Shown here one piece after another: positions 7,044 to 24,134 of a DNA stretch of 64,000 nucleotides. The notes under the pieces were generated by a model that did no database searches, was not told the origin of the DNA, and saw only the letters and a list, made by a program, of their open reading frames with translations. Position 1 is the first letter of the stretch. Each line of letters opens with the position of its first letter. The stretch lies in the sequence record ON568341.1. One strand, written 5' to 3'. A program made the translations under genes and the position numbers.

Positions 7044-7052
7044 AAATAATTG

Positions 7053-9465: not shown

Positions 9466-10050
9466 ATGCGTAATTATACTAAATTCATCCGTACACTGTC
9501 AGAAATGGAAACCAACAAAGAGATCCTTTCAGCTTGTCGGTTAGCTGGCCTGGAGATCATCGGTGCTGGTTCTTCCCGTATAGTTTTCGCTTTAAATGAT
9601 CGGTTAGTGATTAAGGTCGCGAATTGTGATGCGGGTGTAGAACAAAATGAAACTGAATGTAAGGTATGGAATTTTTTAGACTATGACCGCCCTCAGTTGA
9701 AACAGTACTTTGCAAAGGTGCATATGCATTTATGCGATCCTGATAATATGTTTATCGTTATGGATCGGTTGAGTACTGCAAGCAAAGGTAGTGTGAAGCA
9801 CGTAAACGCGTGCAATGAATTAAAGTACAATATTAAACGTAATGCAATCGAACGCCATCACCGCTTTGCTGATGCACTACAACACGTCGATGATACATTA
9901 TCAACACTAACGATAAGAGATATCAGAAAACAGAATATCGGCCAGGATCGTAATGGCCTTATTAAAGTACTTGATTACGGTTTAACCTGCAATATCTGGA
10001 ATCAGTACTATAAAAAGCGTGATGTGGCAGCAAGTAAGGTAACACGATAA
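9466..10050 (+). CDS. Protein kinase-like (Ser/Thr kinase fold)
   Basis: Gly loop GAGSSR, VIK lysine, helix-C QNETE, catalytic loop RDIRKQNIG, DYG metal-binding motif; SD AAGGAG. Confidence 0.8.
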   Translation: MRNYTKFIRTLSEMETNKEILSACRLAGLEIIGAGSSRIVFALNDRLVIKVANCDAGVEQNETECKVWNFLDYDRPQLKQYFAKVHMHLCDPDNMFIVMDRLSTASKGSVKHVNACNELKYNIKRNAIERHHRFADALQHVDDTLSTLTIRDIRKQNIGQDRNGLIKVLDYGLTCNIWNQYYKKRDVAASKVTR

Positions 10051-10060
10051 AAAAGATTAA

Positions 10061-10165
10061 AAAAGGGATTGACTCCGGTCAGTCCCTTTGCTATTATATA
10101 TCCATTGAGAGATAACTCACTGACCCATAGGGTGCGGAAGTGTATCTATTATATAAGTATTCAGT
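10061..10165 (+). ncRNA. Terminator/promoter/small-RNA cassette, copy 3
   Basis: Same hairpin as copies 2 and 4; TGACCCATAGGGTGC core; body resembles copy 1. Confidence 0.5.
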
Positions 10166-10274
10166 ACTGAAAACTATTTTTAAAAAAGTACTTGCAAACT
10201 ATCTCAATGAGCGTATAATGTTTTATATCGAGAGGGGGAAATGGTTCTCCCTAGTACTAAAAGGAATCAAGACG

Positions 10275-10496
10275 ATGACTACTATGACCTGCGTTCACGC
10301 TTCAAATCTTCTGAATGATGCAGCATTTAAAGCAGGTGAAGAATATCAATGCTATCGGGATGAAAATAAAAAAGTTTTTGTAGTTGATAATAATGGTTTC
10401 CATATTGAATTACAATCCGGCTTCACTGGTTTAAATGGTAAATCAGTATGGGGCGTACAGGATGATAAAGGTACATATCATTTTAAACGTAATTAA
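10275..10496 (+). CDS. Hypothetical protein
   Basis: Promoter at 10192, SD AAGGA; start corrected. Confidence 0.75.
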   Translation: MTTMTCVHASNLLNDAAFKAGEEYQCYRDENKKVFVVDNNGFHIELQSGFTGLNGKSVWGVQDDKGTYHFKRN

Positions 10497-10577
10497 GTAT
10501 TGACAAAGTATATCAGTACTGTATAATAGTTTACATCAAGGGGAGAATGGTTCTCCCCACTAAAAGGAAACAAAATT

Positions 10578-10850
10578 ATGTCCAGCTACTCCGCTACTAT
10601 GATCATTAAAGATATGAACGGTAATCCTACTTCTGCTGGTGGATCATTTGGAAACATTAATTTAGATGGTCGGTTATCCATGCAATCAGCCATCGATGCA
10701 GCGAAAGAAGTTTTTAAGAATGAATGTACTGTTAGTAAGCTGGATTATATGGGTTTCGCTATCGAGAAAACTACTCGTTTTGTGAACTACAAAAATCCAC
10801 TGATGATTGATACTAACCTGAAAGCTAACGAAGTGGGGTACTTATTATGA
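10578..10850 (+). CDS. Hypothetical protein
   Basis: Own promoter, hairpin and SD. Confidence 0.75.
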   Translation: MSSYSATMIIKDMNGNPTSAGGSFGNINLDGRLSMQSAIDAAKEVFKNECTVSKLDYMGFAIEKTTRFVNYKNPLMIDTNLKANEVGYLL

Positions 10851-11038
10851 CAGTAGAAGAAGTAAAAAAAGTACTGGCAGTACTACGATATCATAATCAT
10901 TGCAAGGTGAAGAATGATCCTGATTATCTTGATTCATCCCTGGAGGAAGACACCTTGAACGCTATAAGCCATATGCAGACATTAGCAAAGCGTATGACTG
11001 AAAAGAACATGCCGGACTATATCGGAAATAAAATTTAA
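10847..11038 (+). CDS. Hypothetical protein
   Basis: ATGA overlap. Confidence 0.7.
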   Translation: MTVEEVKKVLAVLRYHNHCKVKNDPDYLDSSLEEDTLNAISHMQTLAKRMTEKNMPDYIGNKI

Positions 11039-11124
11039 AAAGTACTTGCATTGTAGTTAGATTAACGTATAATGTTTTATATCGAGAGGGGAAATGGTTT
11101 CCCCTCAAGTCCAGGAGATACACC

Positions 11125-11388
11125 ATGAACACTATCGAAATCACTATCAATGCACACGTATACGACAACGTAGTACTGCAAACTACTATGACCGCCAATG
11201 ATACCAGTACTTTGCGGAATACTGTTATTAGTGCTGTATGTGCCGCTATCGGTGATGTATCCCTGGAAAATTCAGAACACATCAACAACGGTTTCACTAT
11301 GTGCAAACGTGATAACGCAAAACATATCATCGTGGAAGGTTACGGCGGTGTAGAATTTAATGTTTATATGAAAAAAGTACTTGCATAA
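11125..11388 (+). CDS. Hypothetical protein
   Basis: Own promoter, hairpin and SD AGGAG. Confidence 0.75.
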   Translation: MNTIEITINAHVYDNVVLQTTMTANDTSTLRNTVISAVCAAIGDVSLENSEHINNGFTMCKRDNAKHIIVEGYGGVEFNVYMKKVLA

Positions 11389-11455
11389 TAACTAAAACAA
11401 AGTATAATGTTTTGCATAGGGGGAGATATCCTCCCCCACTAAAAGGAGTAATAAA

Positions 11456-11680
11456 ATGGCTAACTTTGATGAACTGATGCGGGAAGTAGCTTACCTGGCA
11501 GAAGAGAAGAAATCATTCGATTCTATCTATAACACCGCTCACCGTGATTCAGTACTGGCATGTAACCAGGATCAAAAAGATGAACTAATCGCCACCTATC
11601 ATGAAGCATGGAAGTACTACCGACAATGGGAGAAAGAAGAAAGTGAGTCTACCATTGACGGCCTCAATAATCTAATCTAA
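11456..11680 (+). CDS. Hypothetical protein
   Basis: Own promoter, hairpin and SD. Confidence 0.75.
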   Translation: MANFDELMREVAYLAEEKKSFDSIYNTAHRDSVLACNQDQKDELIATYHEAWKYYRQWEKEESESTIDGLNNLI

Positions 11681-11756
11681 AAGTTTTATTTCAGTACTAT
11701 TGACATAGCTTGATAGTACTGATGTAATAACTTTACTAACTACAAGGGGAAACATA

Positions 11757-12014
11757 ATGGATCAATTCACACAATATCGGGTAAATCCTCAAGCTATGGC
11801 CTACGTAGAAGACCATAAAACGTTACCAGTACTGCAACCAGTTAAAGGCCGTATCTATCGTGGCCTTGCCTGGGATACGGCCCAGGATGGATATAAAACC
11901 GTCGCCGTGGGTATGTATTGCGGTGATGGTGAATGGTTTGATCCAAATAATCCGGTATCCATTGACAGTACTGAAAAAATGAAATGGGCCGACTACATCG
12001 AAGATATTTCATAA
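11757..12014 (+). CDS. Hypothetical protein
   Basis: Promoter-like cassette and SD. Confidence 0.75.
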   Translation: MDQFTQYRVNPQAMAYVEDHKTLPVLQPVKGRIYRGLAWDTAQDGYKTVAVGMYCGDGEWFDPNNPVSIDSTEKMKWADYIEDIS

Positions 12015-12104
12015 AAACTATTTGACAGTACTAACCAGTAATGTATAATGTTTTACATAGAGCGGGGGAATAGTTCTCCCGCCAATAGTTTGGAGTAAAA
12101 CATT

Positions 12105-12305
12105 ATGTCTATCGCTATCGCCCTGGTTGAAGTACTGAAAGAAGCTAAAGCCAACCTTATCGACGTAAAGATCCAGGAACTACAAAACGGCTTAATCGGC
12201 TGTACTTGTACCGCTGGTGGAGCGGCAGACTATCGAGAACACGAATCACTCGAATCACTGGTTCGGTATCTTACCATGATCGTTGATGATTGGAGAATCA
12301 TCTAA
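12105..12305 (+). CDS. Hypothetical protein
   Basis: Own promoter, hairpin and SD. Confidence 0.75.
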   Translation: MSIAIALVEVLKEAKANLIDVKIQELQNGLIGCTCTAGGAADYREHESLESLVRYLTMIVDDWRII

Positions 12306-12320
12306 CAAAAAAGAATAAAA

Positions 12321-12450
12321 AAAGGGATTGACTCCGGTCAGTCCCTTTGCTATTATATACGCATAGACAAAAACTAGCCCACAGGGTGCATAGGTGTATC
12401 CAAAATATATAGTTAATAACGGTGAGTAACTATCTGCTGGTGGAACTAAA
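12321..12450 (+). ncRNA. Terminator/promoter/small-RNA cassette, copy 4 (with Chi)
   Basis: Same hairpin; TAGCCCACAGGGTGC core; Chi at 12436. Confidence 0.5.
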
Positions 12451-12550
12451 ACTATTAATAAAAAAGTATTGACAAAGTATATCAGTACTGCAATAATGTA
12501 TCTCGTAGGGCGGCAATGGTGCGACGGCCCACAAAGTTAGGAGATTCACC

Positions 12551-12883
12551 ATGAGTACTTCAATCGCTATCGTTAAAGCTTTCATCCGTACTAATGTTTC
12601 CTCTGTATTCATCGACGGCCTCGACCGTAACGTAGAATACTCAATCATTATCGCACAAACGGCAAACGGTTCTCGGTACATCCTGAATGATAGTGAAGCA
12701 AATCACTACTACTTCACTAAAGCCACTGGCTTTAAACGCATCGATGCTGATGTAGTATACGCTAAGATGAATAAGCTGGTAGACAAGATTAACGCGAAAG
12801 GTACTATCGATTTACAGTACTGGACCGAAACCGATCCAGAATATGGATCTCACCGCTACCTGAATCCAGGTATCAAAATGTAA
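12551..12883 (+). CDS. Hypothetical protein
   Basis: Own promoter, hairpin and SD AGGAG. Confidence 0.75.
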   Translation: MSTSIAIVKAFIRTNVSSVFIDGLDRNVEYSIIIAQTANGSRYILNDSEANHYYFTKATGFKRIDADVVYAKMNKLVDKINAKGTIDLQYWTETDPEYGSHRYLNPGIKM

Positions 12884-12972
12884 AAAGTACTTGCATAGTA
12901 CTTAGATTCATGTATAATGTTTTACATAGAGAGGGGGAAATGGTTCTCCCTCCTAAATTAAGGAGTTTTATC

Positions 12973-13374
12973 ATGACCTTCTCAATCACTTCCTTCGCTG
13001 ACGTTTTAGTACTGGCCCGGACTTTTGGTAAAGCTGGCCTTGAGCACGCTGTAAGTAATGGTCATATGCACCCTGAATATTGCCGCATCATCGGTAGCTG
13101 CAAACGTTGGGCCGTGTCCCGTAACATTGAGATTGAAAACTTCAATGACGGCAACAACGAATATACAGTTGATGCAGTATTCGAAGCCGTTGATCTCGGC
13201 GGTATCTATAACACTAACCTGAATGATGTGCGTATCGTTCGCACGGGGTTCGGTGCTTATGATGTATCTATCCGTGAAGCTATGGACAAGGGATACATTA
13301 GCAAGGACCAGTTAGCTTACATCATGCAGCAAACTAAGGAACGTAACGAAGCACGTACTATCTTAGGGTTGTAA
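12973..13374 (+). CDS. Hypothetical protein
   Basis: Promoter at 12891, SD AAGGAG; start corrected. Confidence 0.75.
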   Translation: MTFSITSFADVLVLARTFGKAGLEHAVSNGHMHPEYCRIIGSCKRWAVSRNIEIENFNDGNNEYTVDAVFEAVDLGGIYNTNLNDVRIVRTGFGAYDVSIREAMDKGYISKDQLAYIMQQTKERNEARTILGL

Positions 13375-13398
13375 GCGTTACACATCACCAAACATCAT

Positions 13399-13420
13399 AG
13401 GCCGCCTTGTAGCGGCCTTA
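13399..13420 (+). terminator. Terminator-like hairpin
   Basis: AGGCCGC-cttgta-GCGGCCT. Confidence 0.6.
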
Positions 13421-13442
13421 ACTATATCAGGAGTTCATACAC

Positions 13443-13652
13443 ATGAACTATACAGTATACAGCGTTCTAGGCACTATTGCAGGCGTACATGATAACGTCG
13501 ATGGTGCTATGCGTACAGTACTGCAACAGGTTCCACTAAAGCCTAAGACCATTAAGCAGATGACAGCACGACTAACCAGGGCGACGGCTGGCGTGGAAGT
13601 ATGGCAGGACTATGGGGATACACAGATAATCGTAAGCGTAACGAAGGATTAA
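13443..13652 (+). CDS. Hypothetical protein
   Basis: SD AGGAG. Confidence 0.7.
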   Translation: MNYTVYSVLGTIAGVHDNVDGAMRTVLQQVPLKPKTIKQMTARLTRATAGVEVWQDYGDTQIIVSVTKD

Positions 13653-13676
13653 TGCGTAAAAGGATTTAGTACTGAT

Positions 13677-13749
13677 TCAGAAAAAAGTCAAGGCGTTTTT
13701 TAAATTATGCGTTAAAAAAATGCATAGGTAATCCCTTGACTTTTTTGAA
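13677..13749. repeat. 13-bp perfect inverted repeat at the early/middle boundary
   Basis: AAAAAAGTCAAGG (13681-13693) and CCTTGACTTTTTT (13734-13746). Confidence 0.7.
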
Positions 13750-13843
13750 ATAAAAGGGATTGGACTATGGCAAAATGCGTAGGGGGCTAAAGGGCGGGTA
13801 ACCTTAGCGACTTCGTTAAAGGGGTATTACGAATAAAATGTTA

Positions 13844-13871
13844 TTGACTTTTTATATAAATCGTATAAAAT
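13844..13871 (+). promoter_or_regulatory. sigma70 promoter driving the LGTNYQE array
   Basis: TTGACT-16-TAAAAT. Confidence 0.6.
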
Positions 13872-14099
13872 ATGATTGATAATAATTTTAAGGGAGTCCC
13901 TGTGCGTATTTTAACTCAAGCAGAACACCACGAAAGACTTATCAATAACATGGCTATGATAATGTATAAGTCCCATGACCGTGGTATTGCATATAAGCGT
14001 GAATTAGTACTGGAACTATTCATTGGGACTAACTATCAGGAAAGGTATGTCAACGATTGGATTTGGTATTTAATTGAAGATATAACGAGTAAACTATGA
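13872..14099 (+). CDS. LGTNYQE-family paralogue
   Basis: FIGTNYQE. Confidence 0.8.
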   Translation: MIDNNFKGVPVRILTQAEHHERLINNMAMIMYKSHDRGIAYKRELVLELFIGTNYQERYVNDWIWYLIEDITSKL

Positions 14100-14290
14100 T
14101 AATTTTAACTAAAGAAGAATATCAATCACTGTTACGTAAAAACTACGTAAAGATTTACAATACAGCCACACACGTAGAACGAATGGAGTTATACCTTTTG
14201 ATTACATTGGGAACTAACTATCAGGAAAGATGGGTGATTCAATATATGGATACATTGAAAAATAAAATATTGTCCACGAGGAAACAATGA
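14096..14290 (+). CDS. LGTNYQE-family paralogue
   Basis: TLGTNYQE. Confidence 0.8.
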   Translation: MIILTKEEYQSLLRKNYVKIYNTATHVERMELYLLITLGTNYQERWVIQYMDTLKNKILSTRKQ

Positions 14291-14496
14291 AAATCATAAC
14301 ACACAGACAAGCATTGAGTCGTATGGTGAAGTATCTTGAATTGATGGTGTCTATACCAAAGAGCTTACCAAAAACTGAAAGAGAGATACATTCAGCAGAG
14401 TATCGTCTATTAGCAGTACTGAATACTAACTACCAAGATGAATATGTTGACGATTGGATTCTATCATTAATAGAAGATATAAAGAGTAAACTATGA
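14287..14496 (+). CDS. LGTNYQE-family paralogue
   Basis: VLNTNYQD. Confidence 0.8.
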   Translation: MKIITHRQALSRMVKYLELMVSIPKSLPKTEREIHSAEYRLLAVLNTNYQDEYVDDWILSLIEDIKSKL

Positions 14497-14708
14497 ATAT
14501 CATTGCGAACTCACATCAATATACCGAACGCGTCGCTGCCAGACAACTTGAAATCCTCATAATATACGAAGAAACTTCTGATTTAAACTTAGCTGAGGTA
14601 TTGGAAAATGAAATACTTTTGGGTGCATTCTTGGGAACAGACTATCAGGAGTATTATGAGGAAAAGTATTTGTCATCTCTTGAGAAATACATCAGGAGTA
14701 AACAATGA
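14493..14708 (+). CDS. LGTNYQE-family paralogue
   Basis: FLGTDYQE. Confidence 0.8.
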   Translation: MNIIANSHQYTERVAARQLEILIIYEETSDLNLAEVLENEILLGAFLGTDYQEYYEEKYLSSLEKYIRSKQ

Positions 14709-14932
14709 AACATTTAAGTATAAGAGAGAAGAATAAAATTATCATCAATGTCATGAACCGATATAATCAACTATTGGATAGAGAATACTCAAGTTCATAT
14801 GTGCACAGGATAAACACTACGGATGTACGCATGATGGCTGTACTGGGGACAAACTATCAGGAAAGTTATGTTCATGAGCACATAGTTGCACTCACTAATT
14901 ACATAATGGACAAATGTAATGAACATCATTAA
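14705..14932 (+). CDS. LGTNYQE-family paralogue
   Basis: VLGTNYQE. Confidence 0.8.
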   Translation: MKHLSIREKNKIIINVMNRYNQLLDREYSSSYVHRINTTDVRMMAVLGTNYQESYVHEHIVALTNYIMDKCNEHH

Positions 14933-15143
14933 TAACTTTGAATACGAGGCCCGTGTTAAGAGTGCCAGAGAAAAAGAGAACACCATTTACTTCACTATGA
15001 TGTACTTACAATGGACTGAAATTGAAGAAAAGGTTGCTGAAGTATGGATGTTGGAATTCATGGGGACGCAGTATCAGAATATGTTTGCGGGTGAGTATAT
15101 CAATGTTCTTATGAAACAAATAGAAAGGAAGGAAAAGAACTAA
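14919..15143 (+). CDS. LGTNYQE-family paralogue
   Basis: FMGTQYQN. Confidence 0.8.
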   Translation: MNIINNFEYEARVKSAREKENTIYFTMMYLQWTEIEEKVAEVWMLEFMGTQYQNMFAGEYINVLMKQIERKEKN

Positions 15144-15232
15144 TGGAGGGATGCTGTACTTTATTTGAACTTTTATATATTCATGAACACATAGTTGCCC
15201 TCACAAATCTAATAAAGGATAAATGTAAATGA
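15143..15232 (+). pseudogene. Truncated LGTNYQE-family remnant (29 aa)
   Basis: HEHIVALTNLIKDKCK matches the C-terminus of 14705-14932 (HEHIVALTNYIMDKCN); the motif half is missing. Confidence 0.6.
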
Positions 15233-15486
15233 AACACTTGACTGATGATGAACATGAAACTATAATTCGTAAACTAACCCCCATCACAAGGATAGTATAC
15301 GGTGATCCCAGCCTTACATGGAACCAAATGCAAGCTAAAGTTAATGAGCTATGGTTGCTGTACTTTATGGGGACTCAATATCAAGATAAGTTTTGCACAG
15401 AATATATCGAACAATTAACGAATGTTATACAGGATAAACTAAATGAACGAATTGTGGAAAAATATGAAAACTTTATCAAGCATTGA
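15229..15486 (+). CDS. LGTNYQE-family paralogue
   Basis: FMGTQYQD. Confidence 0.8.
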   Translation: MKHLTDDEHETIIRKLTPITRIVYGDPSLTWNQMQAKVNELWLLYFMGTQYQDKFCTEYIEQLTNVIQDKLNERIVEKYENFIKH

Positions 15487-15715
15487 GTATCAGACTGCCC
15501 TCTTCTCTCTTCTAAATACCCTCCGCACGAACAATAAACTTTATAATTCCCGTGAAGCTGATATTGTCAACGCTGATGTATATCTTAATAAATTCATTGG
15601 GACTAACTATCAAGAACTGTTTGTTTTACGATATATCTCTGCACTAAGAAACGAAATATCAGATAAAACCCGACAAGCCAGAAGAGAATGGAAGAAACAA
15701 TGCGACACAGACTAA
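15464..15715 (+). CDS. LGTNYQE-family paralogue
   Basis: FIGTNYQE. Confidence 0.8.
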   Translation: MKTLSSIEYQTALFSLLNTLRTNNKLYNSREADIVNADVYLNKFIGTNYQELFVLRYISALRNEISDKTRQARREWKKQCDTD

Positions 15716-15951
15716 ATCACAAAATGTATTGTAAACTATTACAGGAACTGACACAGAAACACTATAATACAATATCTTCCATATTACCCTATGATATCAT
15801 GCGTTTAATTCATAGTGAGGCAGAGATGTTAGTACTGATGACCGGTACTGATAAAATAGCAATCACCAGATCGATAGAGCAATATATTGATGCACACTGT
15901 CAATGTATTAGAACTGAGATATGGAGGCGAGTAAATGAAAGTACTGAATGA
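15700..15951 (+). CDS. Degenerate LGTNYQE-family paralogue
   Basis: MTGTDKI at the motif position. Confidence 0.65.
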   Translation: MRHRLNHKMYCKLLQELTQKHYNTISSILPYDIMRLIHSEAEMLVLMTGTDKIAITRSIEQYIDAHCQCIRTEIWRRVNESTE

Positions 15952-16150
15952 GTATCAGTATCATTGGAGGTTACAAACTATAAGAGGGAAAGTTGTTAGT
16001 ATTTCTTTAGACAAGTCTATTGCACAAGAGGACAAATGTGTTATAATAGCTGAAATGAAGTTGGGTGTATTTGTAGGAACAAACTATCAAAACATCTACA
16101 CTGACGTATTATTAAGTGCCTTACGCAACAAGGTGTTATCCAGAGAATGA
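15935..16150 (+). CDS. LGTNYQE-family paralogue
   Basis: FVGTNYQN. Confidence 0.8.
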   Translation: MKVLNEYQYHWRLQTIRGKVVSISLDKSIAQEDKCVIIAEMKLGVFVGTNYQNIYTDVLLSALRNKVLSRE

Positions 16151-16365
16151 GAAAATTAATAGGTTACGAATATGTTAAGCTTCTGAAAACCTGTAGTATT
16201 AGCAGGGTAAAGATTCAATCTGATAAGAGTATTCCTGTTGAACTAAAGTACGCAATGATGGCTGAACTTTATGTAGGTGCACTATTGGGGACAAACTATC
16301 AACAAATGTATGTAGACCTATGGGTTGACGCTCTACAGAAAGAGGTCCAAAGTAAATGCAAATGA
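16147..16365 (+). CDS. LGTNYQE-family paralogue
   Basis: LLGTNYQQ. Confidence 0.8.
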   Translation: MRKLIGYEYVKLLKTCSISRVKIQSDKSIPVELKYAMMAELYVGALLGTNYQQMYVDLWVDALQKEVQSKCK

Positions 16366-16577
16366 TTCATTTATCTTACTATGAATATCAAAAACGTTTA
16401 AATGCATCAAGAGGTATAAGGATTCAAATCTTCAATAACAAAAGATTGAAATCTGAAGCCAAAAAAATCAAAATCATAGAAGCAGAGTTGTGCAACTTTC
16501 TAGGGACGAACTATCAGGAAGGTAAGATAAAAAACTATCTTAGAGAACTAATGATTAGTATCAAGAGTAAATGTTAG
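16356..16577 (+). CDS. LGTNYQE-family paralogue
   Basis: FLGTNYQE. Confidence 0.8.
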   Translation: MQMIHLSYYEYQKRLNASRGIRIQIFNNKRLKSEAKKIKIIEAELCNFLGTNYQEGKIKNYLRELMISIKSKC

Positions 16578-16581
16578 GCAG

Positions 16582-16839
16582 ATGTACATGAAAATGATTA
16601 AATTATCTCAAGCAAAATATAAAGAACGCCTGGAAAAAATTACACCTAAACTTAATGAAATCCATCACGGAGAAGTCATTAAACACGGAAATAAGATGAT
16701 TATGAAACTTGAGTTAAAGGTGGGTGCATTCATAGGAACAAACTATCAGGAGTATTATGTAGATGAATACATAATCGCACTTAAGAGATACATTGGAAGA
16801 AAACTATATCTACAAACTAAAGAATTGTATTGCAAATAA
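16582..16839 (+). CDS. LGTNYQE-family paralogue
   Basis: FIGTNYQE; close relative of 16830-17120. Confidence 0.8.
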   Translation: MYMKMIKLSQAKYKERLEKITPKLNEIHHGEVIKHGNKMIMKLELKVGAFIGTNYQEYYVDEYIIALKRYIGRKLYLQTKELYCK

Positions 16840-17120
16840 ATGTGAGGTTGATGAACATGCAAATGATTAATTTAAGTAAAGATGAATATACCGAGCGTAT
16901 GACAAAAATTACGCACAAACGTAATACAATCTATCACAACCCAGAAATTCAACACAGTAAGAAAATGATTATGATGCGTGAGTTAAAGATGGGTGTATTC
17001 TTAGGAACAAACTATCAAGATACAGAAGTAAATCGCTTAATCGCGGAGTTACTACTGGAAATCAGAGGTAAGCTGTACTTTCATCAAATGACCCAACCAC
17101 TGAGGTGTACTAAGAAATGA
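16830..17120 (+). CDS. LGTNYQE-family paralogue
   Basis: FLGTNYQD. Confidence 0.8.
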   Translation: MQINVRLMNMQMINLSKDEYTERMTKITHKRNTIYHNPEIQHSKKMIMMRELKMGVFLGTNYQDTEVNRLIAELLLEIRGKLYFHQMTQPLRCTKK

Positions 17121-17332
17121 TCAACATCACATTGCAAGAAAGATTCATCCGAATCAACTATGCAATTACCAAATTAGATGCTACTATAGGATTCCAAAGT
17201 CTACCGTTCCAAACAAGAATGATATTAGAGTGCGAAGCTAAATTGGGTGTACTGTTAGGAACGCAACACCAACAACGATATGTGGAAATCTGGATTGATC
17301 TTTTAACCCAAAATGTACATGAGAAAATGTAA
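17117..17332 (+). CDS. LGTNYQE-family paralogue
   Basis: LLGTQHQQ. Confidence 0.8.
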   Translation: MINITLQERFIRINYAITKLDATIGFQSLPFQTRMILECEAKLGVLLGTQHQQRYVEIWIDLLTQNVHEKM

Positions 17333-17569
17333 ATGAAAAATGAAATGATATACTTAACGAATGAAGAGTTTCAAGAGAAGATGTTAAAAATCTATGATAA
17401 TACTCTTGAGTACGTTCCAAATCAATCAATATATGAAGTGTCTGCGAATGTATTATTTCAGAAGCTACCATACGTTCTTGGTACTGATAAACAAGAATTT
17501 ATGGTCAAAAATATGATTGAACATCTTATGATGAGTATTAAGGAAAAAGTAAATGCAAAAACAAAATAA
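17333..17569 (+). CDS. LGTNYQE-family paralogue
   Basis: VLGTDKQE; close relative of 17553-17816. Confidence 0.8.
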   Translation: MKNEMIYLTNEEFQEKMLKIYDNTLEYVPNQSIYEVSANVLFQKLPYVLGTDKQEFMVKNMIEHLMMSIKEKVNAKTK

Positions 17570-17816
17570 AATGATATACTTAACACCTGCTGAGTTAACA
17601 GAAAGACTAGTTAAATCCAGAAGATATACAAATCAACTTCCTCACAACCCAAATCAAAGCCCAGCGGAAAGGAGTGCAGAAGTTTTATTCCAATCACTAC
17701 CATACCTTCTTGGAACTAATAGACAAGAGTATCATATCGAACGTATAATTAAATATCTTAAAATTACTATTAAGGAAAAGATACATGCTCAAGAATTTAA
17801 AAATCCTAACAGCTAA
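17553..17816 (+). CDS. LGTNYQE-family paralogue
   Basis: LLGTNRQE. Confidence 0.8.
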   Translation: MQKQNKMIYLTPAELTERLVKSRRYTNQLPHNPNQSPAERSAEVLFQSLPYLLGTNRQEYHIERIIKYLKITIKEKIHAQEFKNPNS

Positions 17817-18027
17817 TGAATATCATAAGATTGTAATGACGACTAATAGTGCAATTTCTAAAAAATCAAATCCCAAATACATACTGGAACACACATTTGA
17901 AGAACGACAATTAACTTTAGTTGAAGCAAAACTTCTTGCACTCCTAGGAACAAACTATCAAGAAGAGTACGTTAGAAAACTAATATACCTTTTAACTAAA
18001 CATATTAGAAAAAAGAAAAACGCATGA
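17785..18027 (+). CDS. LGTNYQE-family paralogue
   Basis: LLGTNYQE. Confidence 0.8.
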   Translation: MLKNLKILTANEYHKIVMTTNSAISKKSNPKYILEHTFEERQLTLVEAKLLALLGTNYQEEYVRKLIYLLTKHIRKKKNA

Positions 18028-18254
18028 AACACTTGACAGATGATGAACATGGGCTTATAGTAATGGATGTAATCAACATCGAATACAAAAAGTTGATACG
18101 CTACCGTTGTTATGAAGATAAGCAACTCGTTCTAGAAGAACAGAAGTTGTTTCGACTCTTAAACACAAACTACCAAGCACAATACGAAGAATCGTATATG
18201 TACCTTTTGGCGAGGAAAGCAAAAAGAGATTATGAAAATTTTAAGCGAAGGTGA
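18024..18254 (+). CDS. LGTNYQE-family paralogue
   Basis: LLNTNYQA. Confidence 0.8.
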   Translation: MKHLTDDEHGLIVMDVINIEYKKLIRYRCYEDKQLVLEEQKLFRLLNTNYQAQYEESYMYLLARKAKRDYENFKRR

Positions 18255-18447
18255 TGCAGTAATATTACTTATCGAGAATTCACGTAAATTCGTAAACATA
18301 ACACTGTCTGATATAGATGAAGATGACAAAGAAGTACTGAGAGCAGATTTAAGAGTACTGTTACATCTCGGAACAAACCTACAAGAAAGATATGTAGAGT
18401 TCTACATTGATGAACTTAAAGAATCAGTACTGAAAAGATGCAAATGA
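18232..18447 (+). CDS. LGTNYQE-family paralogue
   Basis: HLGTNLQE. Confidence 0.8.
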   Translation: MKILSEGDAVILLIENSRKFVNITLSDIDEDDKEVLRADLRVLLHLGTNLQERYVEFYIDELKESVLKRCK

Positions 18448-18665
18448 AAATCATTACTGACGAAGAATACCTAACAATCATAAATGGACTGTTTTTGAAG
18501 CTATATGCTATTAACATATCAAACCTACCAGATATGGATAAAATTATTAAGAGAAATGAAATCTATGTTCTAGCTACCCTGGGAACTAACTATCAAGAAT
18601 ACGATATTAATGATTATATTAAGACACTTAAACGAGCGATTGAACTAAAATGCCAAAACCACTAG
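18438..18665 (+). CDS. LGTNYQE-family paralogue
   Basis: TLGTNYQE. Confidence 0.8.
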   Translation: MQMKIITDEEYLTIINGLFLKLYAINISNLPDMDKIIKRNEIYVLATLGTNYQEYDINDYIKTLKRAIELKCQNH

Positions 18666-18865
18666 GAACAGCAGAATACATTGAACTCATGGGATTACAC
18701 TTCTCATCCTTTCAGAAACTTATGCGAGAATCAAAGAATGATTTAGAATATACCATCAGAGGTTCAGATTTAAGAATGCTTCTCACCCTAGACACAGATT
18801 CCCAAGAGCGATTTGTCAATGAGCACATTAGAGCACTTTTAATGGAAATTCAAAGTAAACTATGA
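18650..18865 (+). CDS. LGTNYQE-family paralogue
   Basis: TLDTDSQE. Confidence 0.75.
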   Translation: MPKPLGTAEYIELMGLHFSSFQKLMRESKNDLEYTIRGSDLRMLLTLDTDSQERFVNEHIRALLMEIQSKL

Positions 18866-19077
18866 AGGAAATATCAAACCAAGAGTACTTGGCACTATTC
18901 AGAAAGAATAATCATAAATTTATGGCACTTGATACAAGAACTGATATAGGGGAACTTGAAAAAAATCTTTTGCGTTCAGAGATGATAGTACTGACACTTT
19001 TAGGAACACAGCATCAAGAGAGAACTGTTAATTCATATATTGAGATTCTTACGAAGCTTATACAGGAAAAACTATGA
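18862..19077 (+). CDS. LGTNYQE-family paralogue
   Basis: LLGTQHQE. Confidence 0.8.
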   Translation: MKEISNQEYLALFRKNNHKFMALDTRTDIGELEKNLLRSEMIVLTLLGTQHQERTVNSYIEILTKLIQEKL

Positions 19078-19295
19078 GAATCATAACACAAACAGACATA
19101 TTTAAGTTAGCAAGAGAACATACATCTGAAATTGATGCTATAGTATCAAAAAGTTACAATGACCCTTATACACAAGATGTACACTACAATGAATTATGGG
19201 TGTATATACTTTTAGGTACAAATTATCAAGAGCAAGCAGTACAGAAGTATTTGACAGCCTTAAGTACTGCTATTGCTAATGGAATAGGTGTTTAA
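19074..19295 (+). CDS. LGTNYQE-family paralogue
   Basis: LLGTNYQE. Confidence 0.8.
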   Translation: MRIITQTDIFKLAREHTSEIDAIVSKSYNDPYTQDVHYNELWVYILLGTNYQEQAVQKYLTALSTAIANGIGV

Positions 19296-19539
19296 AATGC
19301 TAGTACTGACAGAACTAGAAATGTATCATAGATTTAACAAGTACTATCATTTACTTAAGCCTATACAGAGGATTAAATGTCCATTTGAAGAGAAACAGGT
19401 ATTAATTTATGAGCATAAGTTATTTGTATCATTAGGTACGAATGAACAAGAGTATTATTTGAAGTTGTACTTAATTACTTTAATTGAATTGATTAATCAC
19501 AAAACTCAGAAAGCTAAGAAATCTAAAAATGAAAACTAA
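19288..19539 (+). CDS. LGTNYQE-family paralogue
   Basis: SLGTNEQE. Confidence 0.8.
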   Translation: MFKMLVLTELEMYHRFNKYYHLLKPIQRIKCPFEEKQVLIYEHKLFVSLGTNEQEYYLKLYLITLIELINHKTQKAKKSKNEN

Positions 19540-19867
19540 TATTCAACTCAAGGTATACATATCTTATGAATCTATATACATCAAATGCAGTCTATGTAAA
19601 GATGTAATGGATTATAAAGGTAAGCCATTCACAATTACTTACAGTCTAACAGGAGGTTTTTATATATCTTTTGTTGATTACGAAAATAAAATATACAAGC
19701 ACATTGATATTAAAGATTTAAGTACCTTGTCAGATGAGGAATACTTTCAAGAATCATTAGTATGGGATTTAGAGTTTCCTATGACATTAGTACACAAAAT
19801 GATAGTTCTAATGAAAGAAACTAAACCTGAGCCGAGTGGTTATGAAGAATTCATTATTGAGTATTAA
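19529..19867 (+). CDS. FQ-motif family protein (short type)
   Basis: LSDEEYFQESLVWD. Confidence 0.8.
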   Translation: MKTNIQLKVYISYESIYIKCSLCKDVMDYKGKPFTITYSLTGGFYISFVDYENKIYKHIDIKDLSTLSDEEYFQESLVWDLEFPMTLVHKMIVLMKETKPEPSGYEEFIIEY

Positions 19868-19879
19868 GAGTACTGATAT

Positions 19880-20095
19880 ATGAAAATATTATCATACAAA
19901 GATTATAGTAAGCTTATCAGTGCTTTGCAACCAGAAATTAGGAGAATTAATTCTCTTCCTGTATCTAATGCAGAATGTACAGTACTGAAAAAAGAGTTAA
20001 TATTAAAACGCACAGTAGGTACTAACTATCAGGATAATAGTGTTCGAGATTTAATTAGAGGGTTAATGAACACAATAAAGGCCAAGTGCCATTGA
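19880..20095 (+). CDS. LGTNYQE-family paralogue
   Basis: TVGTNYQD. Confidence 0.8.
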   Translation: MKILSYKDYSKLISALQPEIRRINSLPVSNAECTVLKKELILKRTVGTNYQDNSVRDLIRGLMNTIKAKCH

Positions 20096-20101
20096 CAGTA
20101 C

Positions 20102-20130
20102 TTGACGGAGCTTTTCATTACTGATATAGT
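20102..20130 (+). promoter_or_regulatory. sigma70 promoter
   Basis: TTGACG-17-TATAGT with TG extension. Confidence 0.65.
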
Positions 20131-20159
20131 ACACAAACGTTAATCATAGGGTAGAAATT

Positions 20160-20405
20160 ATGTTAAAATTTTTAAATTTCCTTATCGTCTTGTGTATTGT
20201 TCTTGGGATTGCACCGTTTGTACTGGTGTATATGGATTCAGATGAAATGCAAAAGATGAATTGCACAAAGACGGGACAGAGTAGAGAAGAGACGATTCTT
20301 ATGCCTGTTACCGTTATTGTTAATAATATGCCCATTACAAACATGGTCCCTAACCTAACGACAACGTACCAGTACTCTTGTACAGACGGGGAGAGGTGGA
20401 GATGA
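20160..20405 (+). CDS. Small membrane-anchored protein
   Basis: N-terminal hydrophobic helix FLNFLIVLCIVLGIAPFVLVY. Confidence 0.75.
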   Translation: MLKFLNFLIVLCIVLGIAPFVLVYMDSDEMQKMNCTKTGQSREETILMPVTVIVNNMPITNMVPNLTTTYQYSCTDGERWR

Positions 20406-20722
20406 AATTTAATATAGCAAAAACATCGAATGTATGTATATTTGGTTATGCAGATGAGTTAGGTGATCTTGACATTCTTTTGTACAAAAAGGATGGTGTT
20501 ATGCATTTCAAGTACCAGGATGAAGAGGCAGACAATTATCCTTTACCTAATTTAGTACAAATGCAGGAAGAGGAATTATTCCAGTACAGCTTAGTATATG
20601 ACATTGATATTTGCACGATGCCAGTACTAATTAATATTCAAAAAGTGATGCTCGATGTGTTTGATAGGCTAATACAAGGCACACAAGGAAGAACCATATA
20701 TGTCAATGTACAAGACAATTAA
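20402..20722 (+). CDS. FQ-motif family protein (short type)
   Basis: QEEELFQYSLVYD. Confidence 0.8.
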   Translation: MKFNIAKTSNVCIFGYADELGDLDILLYKKDGVMHFKYQDEEADNYPLPNLVQMQEEELFQYSLVYDIDICTMPVLINIQKVMLDVFDRLIQGTQGRTIYVNVQDN

Positions 20723-20915
20723 TCAAGAATGGAAGACCCAAAAATACAGAGAATTCAATAGGAATTTTACAAAAGACGAATTGAATATAAAAACAACAGA
20801 ATTTGATATGTTTATTTTTCTCGGAACACGTTCACAGGAGCAATTTGTTCATTATTATATAAATTCGTTGCGAACGGAGATAGTATGCAAAACAAAGGGT
20901 ATTATAAAAAGGTAA
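20700..20915 (+). CDS. LGTNYQE-family paralogue
   Basis: FLGTRSQE. Confidence 0.75.
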   Translation: MSMYKTINQEWKTQKYREFNRNFTKDELNIKTTEFDMFIFLGTRSQEQFVHYYINSLRTEIVCKTKGIIKR

Positions 20916-21151
20916 ACCAACATTTGTACGCTACAAAGTACAGGGATTTTTGTTTAAAGGGTGGTGATGAAGATTTTTCTTTGCGATTATCAGAATTTAA
21001 TCTGTTATTTTATCTTGGTACATCGGAACAAGAAGAAATGGCACAGAAATTTATCAAGCACCTTGTACAAAAAATTAATATGCAAATTTTGATGCTTAAG
21101 TTACAGAATGAGATAAATGAATATGAACCCAACAATAGTACTGGATCTTAA
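20885..21151 (+). CDS. LGTNYQE-family paralogue
   Basis: YLGTSEQE. Confidence 0.75.
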   Translation: MQNKGYYKKVNQHLYATKYRDFCLKGGDEDFSLRLSEFNLLFYLGTSEQEEMAQKFIKHLVQKINMQILMLKLQNEINEYEPNNSTGS

Positions 21152-21506
21152 AAAAGTAATATTTCTATTGAATGCCAGAAGTGAATTGTATACAGAGTTA
21201 AAAGAGATTAATGCATTTTATCAGAATTTTGTAATCCAAGAGTTCAGTGATTTAATTACAGATGCATTATTTGAATTCTCGGAGAAATACAAAGGAGCCG
21301 AGTTCAGTGTTAAGAATGTATTACGTCCTTTATCTAAGCGTATAATAAAATTGGATCATTTTAAATTTGACAATAAAGATTTATTCAGCTATAATCCTAA
21401 TACAGCTTTATATTTTATTCCTGATTCAGACAAAGATCACCCAATTCATTACGGATGGATTCTGTCGTACATAGAACAAGGAAAGGAGTATCCTATTAAA
21501 TGGTAA
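21117..21506 (+). CDS. Hypothetical protein
   Basis: Coupled ORF; EKYKG motif similar to the late small-protein family. Confidence 0.7.
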   Translation: MNMNPTIVLDLKKVIFLLNARSELYTELKEINAFYQNFVIQEFSDLITDALFEFSEKYKGAEFSVKNVLRPLSKRIIKLDHFKFDNKDLFSYNPNTALYFIPDSDKDHPIHYGWILSYIEQGKEYPIKW

Positions 21507-21661
21507 GATTATGGCGTTTAGATTATTACACAATTAATGTAAATTATTTGCTGAGTAATATAAAATCCGATTACAAAATATGGATAAAGAACAGAGATAG
21601 TATGTGTTATGAATTTTATTTAGATTATGCTATCAAACGATTTTTAAGAGAAGAACATTAG
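21500..21661 (+). CDS. Hypothetical protein (53 aa, not in the track)
   Basis: SD AAGGAG upstream; fills the gap between coupled genes. Confidence 0.55.
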   Translation: MVRLWRLDYYTINVNYLLSNIKSDYKIWIKNRDSMCYEFYLDYAIKRFLREEH

Positions 21662-21864
21662 TGCAAAATAGTAATACGATAACATTAAATGCATTACAGG
21701 ATTCATTATTAGATAGTATTAAGATGTATTACAATATACATTTGAGGGGTGGCATTGATGATTATAATTATTATTTGAGTTTAATTGTAATTGAGCACCT
21801 TTCAGTACAGGACAGGATTTTACATCCTACAAATCCTATGTATCCATCAATAGGTAAATTATGA
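21661..21864 (+). CDS. Hypothetical protein
   Basis: Coupled ORF, GTG start. Confidence 0.6.
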   Translation: MQNSNTITLNALQDSLLDSIKMYYNIHLRGGIDDYNYYLSLIVIEHLSVQDRILHPTNPMYPSIGKL

Positions 21865-22418
21865 ATGAGATAGAGTTATTAGCACACAAGATAAGTACAA
21901 TAATGCTTATCCTCAATAACAACCATCCTATATCGCAGATAGATGGAATCCTGAGTCAGAGGACAGGTGGTAGTTTATATTTGTCCATAAACGCAAATAT
22001 CGCAAGGAAATACATTGACATTGGTGATGTTGATGCTGAAATCGAATGTGATACAACTGGAATTGTTGATGTAGGTGCATTAATCAGTTCAAATCCTGTA
22101 TCAGTATCCCCATTGACCAAAGGTGTTAGTACAGGATTCGAAGGATATTTGTGGTATAATGCTAATGATAATTATTTTATATATCAGCATTCCAATACAA
22201 ATTATGATGAAGATAAATTTGAGTTCATTGACCCTTATGATGAAGCTGGAGTATTTCAACAATCATTAATCACAAAACCACATCAAATGATGTATCTAAT
22301 GTTATTCAGTACAATGAATTTGAATCCATTAATTAATGGTTTAAAGTTTTATATTCAATTGAATCTGGTTCATATAGTTTATGATTTATTAATGCAAGGA
22401 TATAGTTATGAAGTATAA
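21861..22418 (+). CDS. FQ-motif family protein
   Basis: DEAGVFQQSLIT. Confidence 0.75.
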   Translation: MNEIELLAHKISTIMLILNNNHPISQIDGILSQRTGGSLYLSINANIARKYIDIGDVDAEIECDTTGIVDVGALISSNPVSVSPLTKGVSTGFEGYLWYNANDNYFIYQHSNTNYDEDKFEFIDPYDEAGVFQQSLITKPHQMMYLMLFSTMNLNPLINGLKFYIQLNLVHIVYDLLMQGYSYEV

Positions 22419-22710
22419 AATGATGTATACTCCAGATATGATTTATGTTGAATTAGAAGACGATGACGACGGGTGGAATTTGATTTATTCAATTAGTTCA
22501 GGTTGGTACATGGCACATTTAAATGATAACAAAGTTACAGATTATTTTGTAGATTTCAACACCTTATCCGATGAAGAATTGTTTCAACAACAATTAGTGA
22601 TTGATACAGGTGGTTATGATGTGTTATTATTAAAAAAGATACAGAAAGCTGTTATTGATTTTAAGCCCAATATGTTGCAAAGGAAATATTATGACATCGA
22701 AGTACAATAA
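22408..22710 (+). CDS. FQ-motif family protein (short type)
   Basis: LSDEELFQQQLVID. Confidence 0.8.
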   Translation: MKYKMMYTPDMIYVELEDDDDGWNLIYSISSGWYMAHLNDNKVTDYFVDFNTLSDEELFQQQLVIDTGGYDVLLLKKIQKAVIDFKPNMLQRKYYDIEVQ

Positions 22711-23044
22711 TGTATTTGATATTAAGAAATTAAAAGAATGGGTTTATAGTATTGAAATTGAAGCAATTCCTTATCATAGATACAAACAATATGATTTATG
22801 TAATATAGATATTCGTGAGTTGTACGCATATTATCAGAGTGCATTAGAGATGCATAAGATATTTTTGAGTTCAAATTACATGACACGTTGTAATGATGCT
22901 TTTAAAGAATTTAATAATTATAATTTAGTACAAAAATATGTAGTATCAAAGTACATGTACAATCAAGGAATTAAAGGTTGTATTGAATTCAATTCGGTCT
23001 TTGCTTTAGTTGAGATAATTTTATGCAGTACATGTCTGATTTAG
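22691..23044 (+). CDS. Hypothetical protein
   Basis: SD AAGGA; coupled. Confidence 0.65.
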   Translation: MTSKYNNVFDIKKLKEWVYSIEIEAIPYHRYKQYDLCNIDIRELYAYYQSALEMHKIFLSSNYMTRCNDAFKEFNNYNLVQKYVVSKYMYNQGIKGCIEFNSVFALVEIILCSTCLI

Positions 23045-23520
23045 AGTTTAGTTTAGATGCTGCTTTTAAATTTGTACACAAGATAGAAACAATATATCGT
23101 ACATTATGTGCAATACGATTAGTAACATCTGAACTTGATGTTGGTAAAAGGTATCAGGTATGGAATAACACATTTCTAGACAAAGAGCGTTGTTCAACTG
23201 GGTTTAATATTTTATCATTTAATCCAAGTAATTGTTACCCAGAGAAGCATGAGCGTTATCCGAATGATGACATGTGGTTTGAGTACAAAGAAGATGGTGA
23301 TATGTCGTTCATTGAAGTTCCTGATGATTTTAATGCACAAGATTTAACTGAAGAATGGTGGTTCCAGCAGAATTTAGTCCACGATGATATTGATTTATTT
23401 TTTTATGTAGTATTTAAAATGCTTTATCATAACAAGATAGTACAAGATAGTGTATTTTTTTCATGTCTATATATTGATGATTTGTACAATGAAATTCAAA
23501 TCAACATGCCTGTATCGTAA
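23023..23520 (+). CDS. FQ-motif family protein
   Basis: TEEWWFQQNLVHD. Confidence 0.8.
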   Translation: MQYMSDLEFSLDAAFKFVHKIETIYRTLCAIRLVTSELDVGKRYQVWNNTFLDKERCSTGFNILSFNPSNCYPEKHERYPNDDMWFEYKEDGDMSFIEVPDDFNAQDLTEEWWFQQNLVHDDIDLFFYVVFKMLYHNKIVQDSVFFSCLYIDDLYNEIQINMPVS

Positions 23521-23574
23521 GATATGGGCTTTTTTTGTTTTGGTATTGACATAGAAGTACAAAACTGTTATCAT
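23508..23574 (+). terminator. Terminator followed by a sigma70 promoter
   Basis: GCCTGTATC...GATATGGGC plus T7, then TTGACA-17-TATCAT. Confidence 0.7.
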
Positions 23575-23600
23575 GGGTAATCATTTTAAAGGAGGAATTT

Positions 23601-24134
23601 ATGGCGAGTTTTATGGTTCCAAGTACATACGAAGATGCATCAAGTGCAGTGCATAAGGTTCATCATATTTTTAATTTAATTATTAATGCATCAAAAAATA
23701 AAATGTATGCACCTCTAGTGAAATTTAATAAAAATGAGGAAATTTTTGTTAGTACAGAACAAACGATTTTTCCATATTTCAATAAAGATAGATTATGGTT
23801 CATGCATTCAGTCGCATTACAAAGATATAATATAACAAGATCCAACGAAAATCATAATCCAAGATATTTGCATATATCGTTATACCATCCCGATATTGGA
23901 GAGGATGAATATTTTCAGTACAGCACAGTACACCACCATGAAGATATCTTTGCTGCTATGCTTATTGCTAAATTGAACACCGTTGATTTGGAGAAGCACA
24001 AATACAATAATAAATCATGTAAGATCATAATCCCTGCATTCATAGCTCTTTATGATTATGTGGTGCATAACAAAAAAGATGATACATATGCTTTCAATGA
24101 AGAGTATTTGAATTTTTTTAAGGAGAACATATGA
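23601..24134 (+). CDS. FQ-motif family protein
   Basis: GEDEYFQYSTVHH. Confidence 0.8.
   Translation: MASFMVPSTYEDASSAVHKVHHIFNLIINASKNKMYAPLVKFNKNEEIFVSTEQTIFPYFNKDRLWFMHSVALQRYNITRSNENHNPRYLHISLYHPDIGEDEYFQYSTVHHHEDIFAAMLIAKLNTVDLEKHKYNNKSCKIIIPAFIALYDYVVHNKKDDTYAFNEEYLNFFKENI

Follow-up and report, generated by a model that had tools for sequence, protein, structure and literature searches.

Positions 13872–21151 of the 64-kb stretch of DNA analysed here (64,000 nucleotides (nt); hereafter the window) hold a tandem array of small, diverged paralogous genes. Escherichia phage UE-S1 (ON568341.1, 358 kb; genus Asteriusvirus) matches the window at 100% identity across 13800–21200, and 35 further E. 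coli and Salmonella jumbo phages (also Asteriusvirus; for example, G17, Sharanji, slurp01, phAPEC6, PBECO4, SP27 and UB) match this region at 80–90% identity, in several pieces. Every gene under the match is annotated as 'hypothetical protein' in all records. A family hidden Markov model (HMM), built from motif-bearing open reading frames (ORFs) and searched against all six-frame ORFs of at least 35 amino acids (aa) in the window, recovered 29 clear members (E values from 1.4 × 10−27 to 1.2 × 10−5), all on the + strand: 27 in the array, every one of them intact, and two outliers further downstream (Table 1). The next-best score belonged to ORF 15688–15951 (E = 0.025), with all remaining ORFs at E > 0.3. 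An initial annotation, made from the letters of this DNA, had listed 25 consecutive ORFs, three more up to 21151 and outliers starting at 32515 and 32711; the latter five were all recovered by the HMM, and the run of 25 stands with its coordinates, except that it comprises 24 clear members and ORF 15688–15951, a probable degenerate member.

This degenerate ORF aligned with the family in register but weakly in profile–profile comparison (hhalign; E = 0.003, probability 10%), and its motif retains G-T only. Its AlphaFold2 (AF2) model, for which the alignment input was window sequences only, was mediocre (predicted local distance difference test (pLDDT) score of 78; three long helices), and the best Foldseek neighbour of that model was a family member (probability 0.87, E = 0.66). 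Orthologues are kept in eight phages with a nonsynonymous/synonymous substitution ratio (ω) of 0.28, and the ORF is therefore a real gene. Array ORFs span 63–96 aa and are as tightly packed as first described, with 16 of the 26 junctions overlapping and 11 of the 26 doing so by 4 nt (starts chosen by family alignment). One spacer, the 85 bp at 15144–15228, holds the remnant of a further copy that was truncated once and has lost its ORF; at the same position and between the same flanking genes, a 52-aa gene is found in G17, slurp01, Sharanji and SD-15. Three non-family genes interrupt the distal array. Judged by alignment with relatives, the most probable start of the first gene is the GTG at 13902. 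This codon is preceded by a Shine–Dalgarno sequence (13890–13896) and is an ATG in relatives, whereas the ATG at 13872 is not conserved among them.

Table 1 Features of the array region and the outlying family members, in window coordinates.
Feature	Coordinates	Strand	Evidence and remarks
Inner edge of ~21-kb left direct terminal repeat (~13804, by homology) in GC-rich block	13775–13815		Alignment of relatives
Sigma-70-type promoter-like site, 10/12 matches, 16-nt spacer	13844–13871	+	Directly upstream of array
Member 1, 65 aa from GTG	13902–14099	+	HMM, start alignment
Member 2	14096–14290	+	HMM, E = 2.5 × 10−19; PHROG 4148
Member 3, UE-S1 allele divergent from other records	14287–14496	+	HMM, nt comparison
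Member 4, most acidic copy, net charge −7	14493–14708	+	HMM
Member 5	14705–14932	+	HMM
Member 6	14919–15143	+	HMM
Remnant of further copy	15144–15228	+	DNA repeat comparison, cluster comparison
Member 7	15229–15486	+	HMM
Member 8; longest ORF begins at 15443	15464–15715	+	HMM
Probable degenerate member	15688–15951	+	HMM, hhalign, AF2, Foldseek, ω
Member 9	15935–16150	+	HMM
Member 10, copy modelled with AF2	16147–16365	+	HMM; pLDDT 97.6
Member 11	16362–16577	+	HMM
Member 12, adjacent duplicate of member 13	16594–16839	+	HMM; 73% nt identity over 221 nt
Member 13	16863–17120	+	HMM
Member 14	17117–17332	+	HMM
Member 15, adjacent duplicate of member 16	17345–17569	+	72% nt identity over 114 nt, 49% aa identity
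Member 16	17571–17816	+	HMM
Member 17	17785–18027	+	HMM
Member 18	18024–18254	+	HMM
Member 19	18232–18447	+	HMM
Member 20	18444–18665	+	HMM
Member 21	18650–18865	+	HMM
Member 22	18862–19077	+	HMM
Member 23	19074–19295	+	HMM
Member 24	19297–19539	+	HMM
Interleaved family B gene, PHROG 13866/15629	19529–19867	+	Paralogue search
Member 25	19880–20095	+	HMM
Interleaved non-family gene, 81 aa, conserved in 10 phages	20160–20405	+	ω = 0.25
Interleaved family B gene	20378–20722	+	Paralogue search
Member 26, divergent	20706–20915	+	HMM, E = 1 × 10−10
Member 27, divergent, start uncertain	20885–21151	+	HMM, E = 1.2 × 10−5
Outlying member, divergent	32515–32733	+	HMM, E = 1.1 × 10−5; equivalent pair in ECO103 4-12-1
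Outlying member	32711–32902	+	HMM, E = 1.4 × 10−18

Searched against 1.84 billion representative proteins, the family profile found only 99 clusters, of 52–122 aa with one exception of 269 aa, and a search of 5.8 billion sequences gave 90 matches, of which the named ones were all Escherichia phages or 'E. coli' assemblies with a 343–385-kb contig. Contigs of this size that encode family proteins occur in many assemblies labelled Escherichia coli; they represent Asteriusvirus genomes that were assembled along with those of bacterial isolates. The same architecture is also seen on two long contigs from metagenomes. Nearly half of the representatives (44 of the 99) were less than 50% identical to, or only partly covered, every copy of the ten arrays compared below, and further types therefore exist; some of these came from divergent Asteriusvirus phages (Turkey5 and JNE01) and one from RaK2-like Klebsiella phages. 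Scanning 28 kb of RaK2 around the match revealed six scattered members, two of them fused to a shared extra C-terminal domain of ~55 aa (128 and 115 aa; RaK2 locus coordinates 15149–15535 and 18814–19161), and UB and EC.P1 each encode one copy joined to a 200-aa domain (269 aa in total; UB locus coordinates 9970–10779) that occurs as a stand-alone gene in RaK2. Neither Pfam nor the PDB gave a match to the C-terminal domain of the 269-aa fusion, and the window holds no homologue of it; both extra domains are without a known relative. In ECO103 4-12-1 (complete, 352 kb, scanned piecewise), the 30 members are confined to a single 21-kb stretch, with 28 in the array and two ~13 kb away. The family is, by this distribution, a lineage-specific expansion, from ~6 copies in Alcyoneusvirus (RaK2-like) to 21–31 in Asteriusvirus. 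A single-copy search of IMG/VR and GTDB genomes found no relative and says little, as it needs near-exact peptides.

The array lies next to the edge of a long direct terminal repeat, in line with its initial placement as the first genes after an early region. In vB_Ec-M-J the annotated repeat spans 1–21525 and is followed by the first family gene, with its start at 21,624; the repeat of fEgEco12 is 20,993 bp, as verified by restriction digests (PMC13070987), and the segment of this genome that matches window position 13800 begins at 20,989. Because the Ec-M-J annotation and the fEgEco12 repeat agree, the inner edge can be placed at about window position 13804, and window 1–13800 is therefore the inner part of the ~21-kb repeat, with the array starting ~100 bp beyond the edge, in the unique genome and not inside the repeat. 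The UE-S1 record does not start at a physical genome end, and the 8.3-kb repeat reported for this phage has been judged probably mis-assigned (PMC13070987); in many records that do open at the physical end, the array is reached after 20–26 kb. The GC-rich block at the edge (13775–13815) is kept in every aligned relative, even the divergent Turkey5, and could be a signal tied to generating the repeat boundary. Two phages differ just ahead of the array: in A4, an additional 272-aa gene (locus coordinates 2120–2938) separates the final gene of the repeat from the array, and the Salmonella phage SD-15_S21 is without the promoter stretch ahead of the first family gene (locus coordinates ~2500–2560).

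Signals at this boundary are compatible with transcription of the array from a single upstream promoter. The hexamers and spacing of the promoter-like site at 13844–13871, followed by the Shine–Dalgarno sequence and start codon, are conserved in seven relatives, among them Turkey5, in which the first gene differs. Terminator-like sites within the array are no commoner than in shuffled sequence, and the lack of an excess of promoters or terminators within it fits one long operon. In the adjoining repeat, window 1–9000 holds 55 sigma-70-like sites (31.4 ± 5.9 in shuffles) and 13 terminator-like hairpins (5.6 in shuffles), and seven perfect-consensus promoters, all on the + strand, lie within 1–12500 (at 4273, 5659, 7308, 7648, 8078, 10500 and 12022). 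By Pfam, the repeat genes at 5716–6072, 8608–8862 and 9409–10050 encode a GNAT acetyltransferase (E = 4 × 10−9), a ParE-like toxin domain (E = 6 × 10−11) and a weak kinase-like match (E = 4 × 10−3, below the cut-off), respectively. Such a profile of signals and genes is typical of early takeover genes that depend on the host polymerase. Window 1–12500 as a whole resembles a series of short early transcription units. The repeat also contains four copies of a 28-nt GC-rich stem-loop, identical at 7055–7082, 10062–10089 and 12321–12348 and variant at 3698–3725, with a −35-like hexamer in the stem followed by a −10-like hexamer, which may be a combined terminator/promoter cassette.

The copies have a central G-T-N-Y-Q motif, in which T and Q are present in 27 of the 27 array copies, G in 24 of the 27, and N and Y in 18 of the 27 each. 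The codons of this motif are mixed (GGA 12, GGG 7 and GGT 5 for G; ACA 14, ACT 9 and ACG 4 for T; CAA 18 and CAG 9 for Q); because synonymous codons vary freely, conservation acts on the protein and not on the DNA. Pairwise identity, averaged over the 27 copies, is 0.62 in the motif, 0.27–0.28 in helices 1 and 4, and 0.10–0.18 in helix 2, the loop and helix 3. Codon mix and regional identity thus bear out the description of a conserved central motif with variable flanks under protein-level selection, and the proposal of a helical protein family is supported by the AF2 model of member 10, a four-helix domain (pLDDT 97.6, predicted template modelling score 0.82; alignment of 29 paralogues). In this model the helices span residues 6–14, 17–25, 31–45 and 52–71, a short N-terminal strand is joined to the motif T by a one-residue bridge, and the motif sits at the junction of helices 3 and 4. 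A glycine that ends one helix, followed by threonine or asparagine and an acidic or amide residue that starts the next, is a standard capping arrangement. Because the motif is located at a helix junction with this capping pattern, the model suggests that it is mainly a fold determinant.

At the level of known families, the copies form one family, PHROG 4148, to which 10 of the 10 copies tested matched over their full length (E values from 7 × 10−10 to 3.6 × 10−22 (4 × 10−22)), with partial assignment to PHROG 28039; both are listed as of unknown function, and PHROG 4148 thus gives this family a name without a functional annotation. Pfam searches, first with ten copies and then with all 29, returned scattered sub-threshold single matches and nothing consistent, with no helix-turn-helix or other DNA-binding domain and no immunity family; PADLOC likewise gave scattered single matches to six different families, none common to several copies. 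A PDB sequence profile search found no relative of the family (prefoldin, at E = 0.14, was rejected), and Foldseek against the PDB found no solved structure better than E = 2.4 and no DNA-binding fold. Two Foldseek candidates, the helices of the T7 gp11 and KP32 tail tubular proteins (45 residues) and the T4 Vs.4 sponge (root-mean-square deviation 16.8), were set aside as trivial helical overlap. In the viral model library the only significant Foldseek matches were paralogues from 121Q, UB, slurp01 and PBECO4. The initial annotation had suggested anti-defence proteins, decoys or host-range modulators and had named a known housekeeping domain as a contrary outcome; no characterised protein was matched by sequence, profile or fold. 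Family copies are also absent from the virion proteome: of the 62 proteins in the phAPEC6 virion, none is of 7–10 kDa or falls within the gene numbers of this region, small proteins being easily missed by mass spectrometry (PMC7247149, Table 1).

These protein properties bear on whether the copies form a nucleic-acid-binding set, acting as transcription or translation regulators or as nucleoid organisers, as was suggested for the zinc-ribbon proteins of phage G (PMC7824862). In favour of such a role, the copies are small helical domains encoded early in the genome, and 15 of the 29 are basic (isoelectric point (pI) > 8.5); they are hydrophilic (none hydrophobic), with pI values of 4.5–9.9 and net charges of −7 to +9. 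Against such a role, nine are acidic (pI < 6.5, with charges down to −7), the conserved positions are not basic, and, as described above, neither Pfam in the 29 copies nor Foldseek gave a DNA-binding domain or fold. With 0–2 cysteines per copy, none of them conserved, the family also falls short of the four metal-binding Cys/His residues of a zinc ribbon. We consider nucleic-acid binding an unlikely common role.

We compared the arrays of ten phages, with copies clustered at an arbitrary cut-off of 60% identity. As the initial annotation had anticipated, copy number varies among relatives (21, 23, 26, 27, 28, 29, 30, 30, 30 and 31 copies). The same annotation saw in the array a genomic accordion, that is, recent repeated duplication with expanding and contracting copy number and positive selection in an arms race. 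Several observations have this character: single-gene insertions and losses occur, one remnant survives in UE-S1, one cluster has two or three copies in seven phages, and two adjacent pairs in UE-S1 are recognisable as duplicates at the DNA level (73% identity over 221 nt and 72% over 114 nt). These two pairs are, however, the only such duplicates; near-identical copies are lacking, no full-length pair exceeds 49% aa identity, and non-adjacent copies share a few short DNA segments. Moreover, 22 of the 58 identity clusters occur in at least eight of the ten phages, and each copy has its positional orthologue, in collinear order, in nine of the ten apart from single-gene insertions or losses (in Turkey5, 19 of the 21 types are private).

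Selection, estimated from pairwise Nei–Gojobori comparisons that were pooled (so that a few positively selected sites could escape and recombination blurs the values), points the same way. Orthologue ω for the family is 0.39 (30 clusters, range 0–0.76), compared with 0.34 for non-family neighbours and a tighter 0.08–0.31 for genes of the terminal repeat. The suggested comparison of motif and flanks gave its lowest value in the motif (0.19), followed by the helices and loop (0.36–0.46, with 0.46 in helix 2) and the N- and C-terminal extensions (0.83). These ratios firmly indicate purifying selection on every copy and no gene-wide or region-wide positive selection, and diversifying selection, as first proposed, is not borne out. 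The accordion reading is largely refuted by these sequence comparisons, and we regard it as improbable.

A further alternative is that the array is dispensable filler, duplicated DNA that is kept to fill a larger capsid (the 'ratchet' of Hua et al. 2017) and has no function per copy. Those authors read the 121Q array as tandem duplication adding to genome growth (PMC5646251), the surrounding arm is full of paralogue families and ORFans, and copies are lost without obvious compensation. Yet all 27 ORFs are intact and constrained, most strongly in the motif, most copies retain their order and identity throughout the genus, and the promoter, Shine–Dalgarno sequence and start codon are conserved, all of which makes filler very improbable. 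The strong constraint on the polar motif positions could instead reflect an adaptor, in which the motif face docks all copies on one phage or host hub and the variable face, or a fused domain, brings in clients; the N-terminal placement of the domain in fusions to unrelated C-terminal domains (RaK2-like phages, UB and EC.P1) is in keeping with this. General protein structure offers another explanation of the motif, as a helix C-cap/N-cap turn that holds the fold; no hub candidate could be identified and fusions are few, and we doubt that the adaptor explanation is correct.

Divergence within the array is unevenly distributed. Successive genes of UE-S1 and G17 are 94, 94, 75, 93, 76, 98, 81 and 95% identical, the nt identity of adjoining genes to one and the same relative ranges from 74% to 99%, and the nearest relative switches gene by gene. 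The third gene (14287–14496) has ~73–81% nt identity to all 33 other records, whereas its neighbours are ~93% identical to G17; it is a single-gene allele replacement from a donor absent from the database. Within genes, the halves before and after the motif are sharply unequal in divergence (for example, 11% versus 40%) in 39 of the 747 orthologue pairs, from seven clusters (P < 0.001 each), where fewer than 1 of the 747 would be expected by chance. This pattern suggests that recombination among alleles and paralogues, often near the motif codons, shuffles half-genes as well as whole genes. A chimaera test at sites where UE-S1 lacks a gene gave no clean signature, only uneven half-gene identities. 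Taken together, the comparisons firmly indicate an old multigene family in which gene-sized gains, losses and allele exchanges alter the repertoire.

On this basis, we suggest that the array may be an early-expressed battery of small binding proteins, each directed against a different host protein, that serves host takeover and possibly counter-defence; we put the probability of this reading at roughly 40%, with early expression, protein binding and host targets all deduced from the features above. A soluble four-helix domain of ~70 residues expanded long ago within the Asteriusvirus lineage. Host RNA polymerase would most likely read the operon early, with or just after the takeover genes of the repeat, because the operon adjoins the repeat edge behind a conserved sigma-70-type promoter. 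Most plausibly, the motif at the junction of helices 3 and 4 and the hydrophobic core hold the fold together, while the surfaces of helices 2 and 3, which differ in every copy, would most likely allow each copy to bind a different partner. The small binders could then neutralise or redirect different host proteins in the course of takeover, counter-defence included. Diversification would proceed by duplication of neighbours, half-gene recombination around the motif and gene-sized allele exchange between co-circulating phages.

Several points weigh against this interpretation. The binding partners are entirely hypothetical, and the division into structural conserved residues and surface-exposed variable ones follows from predicted secondary structure and general helix-capping rules. 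No similarity was found to a characterised inhibitor, anti-defence protein or antitoxin by Pfam, PDB profile or Foldseek-PDB searches, no dedicated anti-defence library having been searched. The promoter at 13844–13871 is a 10/12 consensus match, promoter-like sites in 9000–24000 are not enriched over shuffles, and no Asteriusvirus transcriptome or other expression data were found in the literature. The lack of any region with ω > 1, together with the conserved gene order, fits stable, specialised functions equally well as an arms race. Finally, the downstream non-family neighbours are equally divergent (ω of 0.25–0.46), and the array is therefore not uniquely fast-evolving. A more specific version of the proposal, in which the array is a library of ~30 early inhibitors on a new four-helix scaffold, each directed against a different defence effector or abortive-infection toxin, with half-gene shuffling at the motif generating new specificities, seems to us unlikely.

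The array is one of several paralogue families in this 64-kb arm, the whole of which consists of ORFans and multigene families. Family B has eight copies in the window (19529–19867, 20378–20722, 22408–22710, 27543–28271, 28268–28627, 34051–34413, 34759–35100 and 36637–36999) of ~100–120 aa, one of them internally duplicated, with an acidic-Phe-Gln motif of its own; it corresponds to PHROG 13866/15629 (function unknown), two of its copies are interleaved with the main array, and hhalign found no profile relation between the two families. A third family has seven copies of ~150–165 aa (PHROG 9317; 28637–30934, 36177–36680 and 37384–37878), and a fourth has four copies of ~91–103 aa (PHROG 21004/32291; 53960–55369). 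A tRNA-Cys with anticodon ACA, called by ARAGORN at 30070–30154, lies inside ORF 30022–30510 and is probably spurious.

The existence of the array is not new. One sentence each in the account of phage 121Q (Hua et al. 2017, mBio, PMC5646251) and in the phAPEC6 paper ('array of closely related genes'; PMC7247149) mentions it, both without a description of the family or its fold, position, selection regime or function. The family is not discussed in the UE-S1, Sharanji and fEgEco12 papers or in a jumbo-phage review, and literature searches for analogous phage arrays returned nothing relevant. The 121Q array comes from a phage of this genus and most probably represents the same locus: genes 320–338 of 121Q match by BLAST, the UE-S1 model has 121Q proteins as its best structural matches, and orthologous order is collinear in nine of the ten phages compared, all of which place the UE-S1 genes in the same Asteriusvirus array. 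The wording 'very similar' in the earlier account was overstated, as the copies are 13–39% identical to the reference copy. What is added here are the limits of the family, its predicted fold, its boundary position with a conserved promoter, its expansion relative to RaK2, its selection regime and its mosaic evolution. The family is uncharacterised, and the array is a well-delimited candidate rather than a discovery. It offers a clean natural example of how a phage multigene family evolves, by old duplication, allele exchange and recombination at a motif. If the copies were early inhibitors of host factors, the array would represent ~30 ready-made small binders, with more than 50 types across the genus, on a new and very stable-looking fold, and would show how a virulent jumbo phage that lacks a nucleus-like shelter deals with varied strains of E. 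coli and Salmonella.

Among known systems, a parallel is offered by Bacillus phage G, in which a lineage-specific expansion of ~35 zinc-ribbon proteins has been described (Iyer et al. 2021, PMC7824862). There, too, a jumbo phage carries tens of copies of one small domain, with a function that has been guessed. The domain is unrelated, however: the UE-S1 copies are all-helical and poor in cysteine, and the two phages belong to different lineages. Poxvirus accordions of the K3L type consist of recent, near-identical copies of a host-interaction gene that appear and collapse within passages. The UE-S1 array resembles them in its tandem small-gene copies and in a copy number that varies between close relatives (21–31), but differs in that its copies are ancient and individually conserved, with no near-identical ones among them.

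African swine fever virus and other large DNA viruses carry terminal multigene families for which roles in host range and immune evasion have been shown experimentally. Like these, the array comprises diverged paralogues in a variable arm beside a terminal repeat, with an isolate-dependent copy number; there is no sequence relation, those viruses infect eukaryotes, and for the UE-S1 array such roles are hypothetical. The terminal-redundancy module of phage SPO1 and the pre-early genes of T5 are sets of small early genes at a genome end, with host-type promoters. It is the UE-S1 repeat itself that resembles such a takeover module; the SPO1 and T5 genes are unrelated to one another and lie inside the repeat, whereas the array is one family lying just outside it. 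Bacterial polymorphic-toxin loci contain tandem small, diverged helical immunity paralogues, each of which is thought to neutralise a different partner. These loci are cellular and not phage-borne, and no Pfam immunity family matched in the 29 copies, but they share with the array its tandem runs of small, diverged and mostly helical paralogues, and, if the copies do form an inhibitor library, the array would be a phage counterpart of the bacterial immunity-protein arrays.

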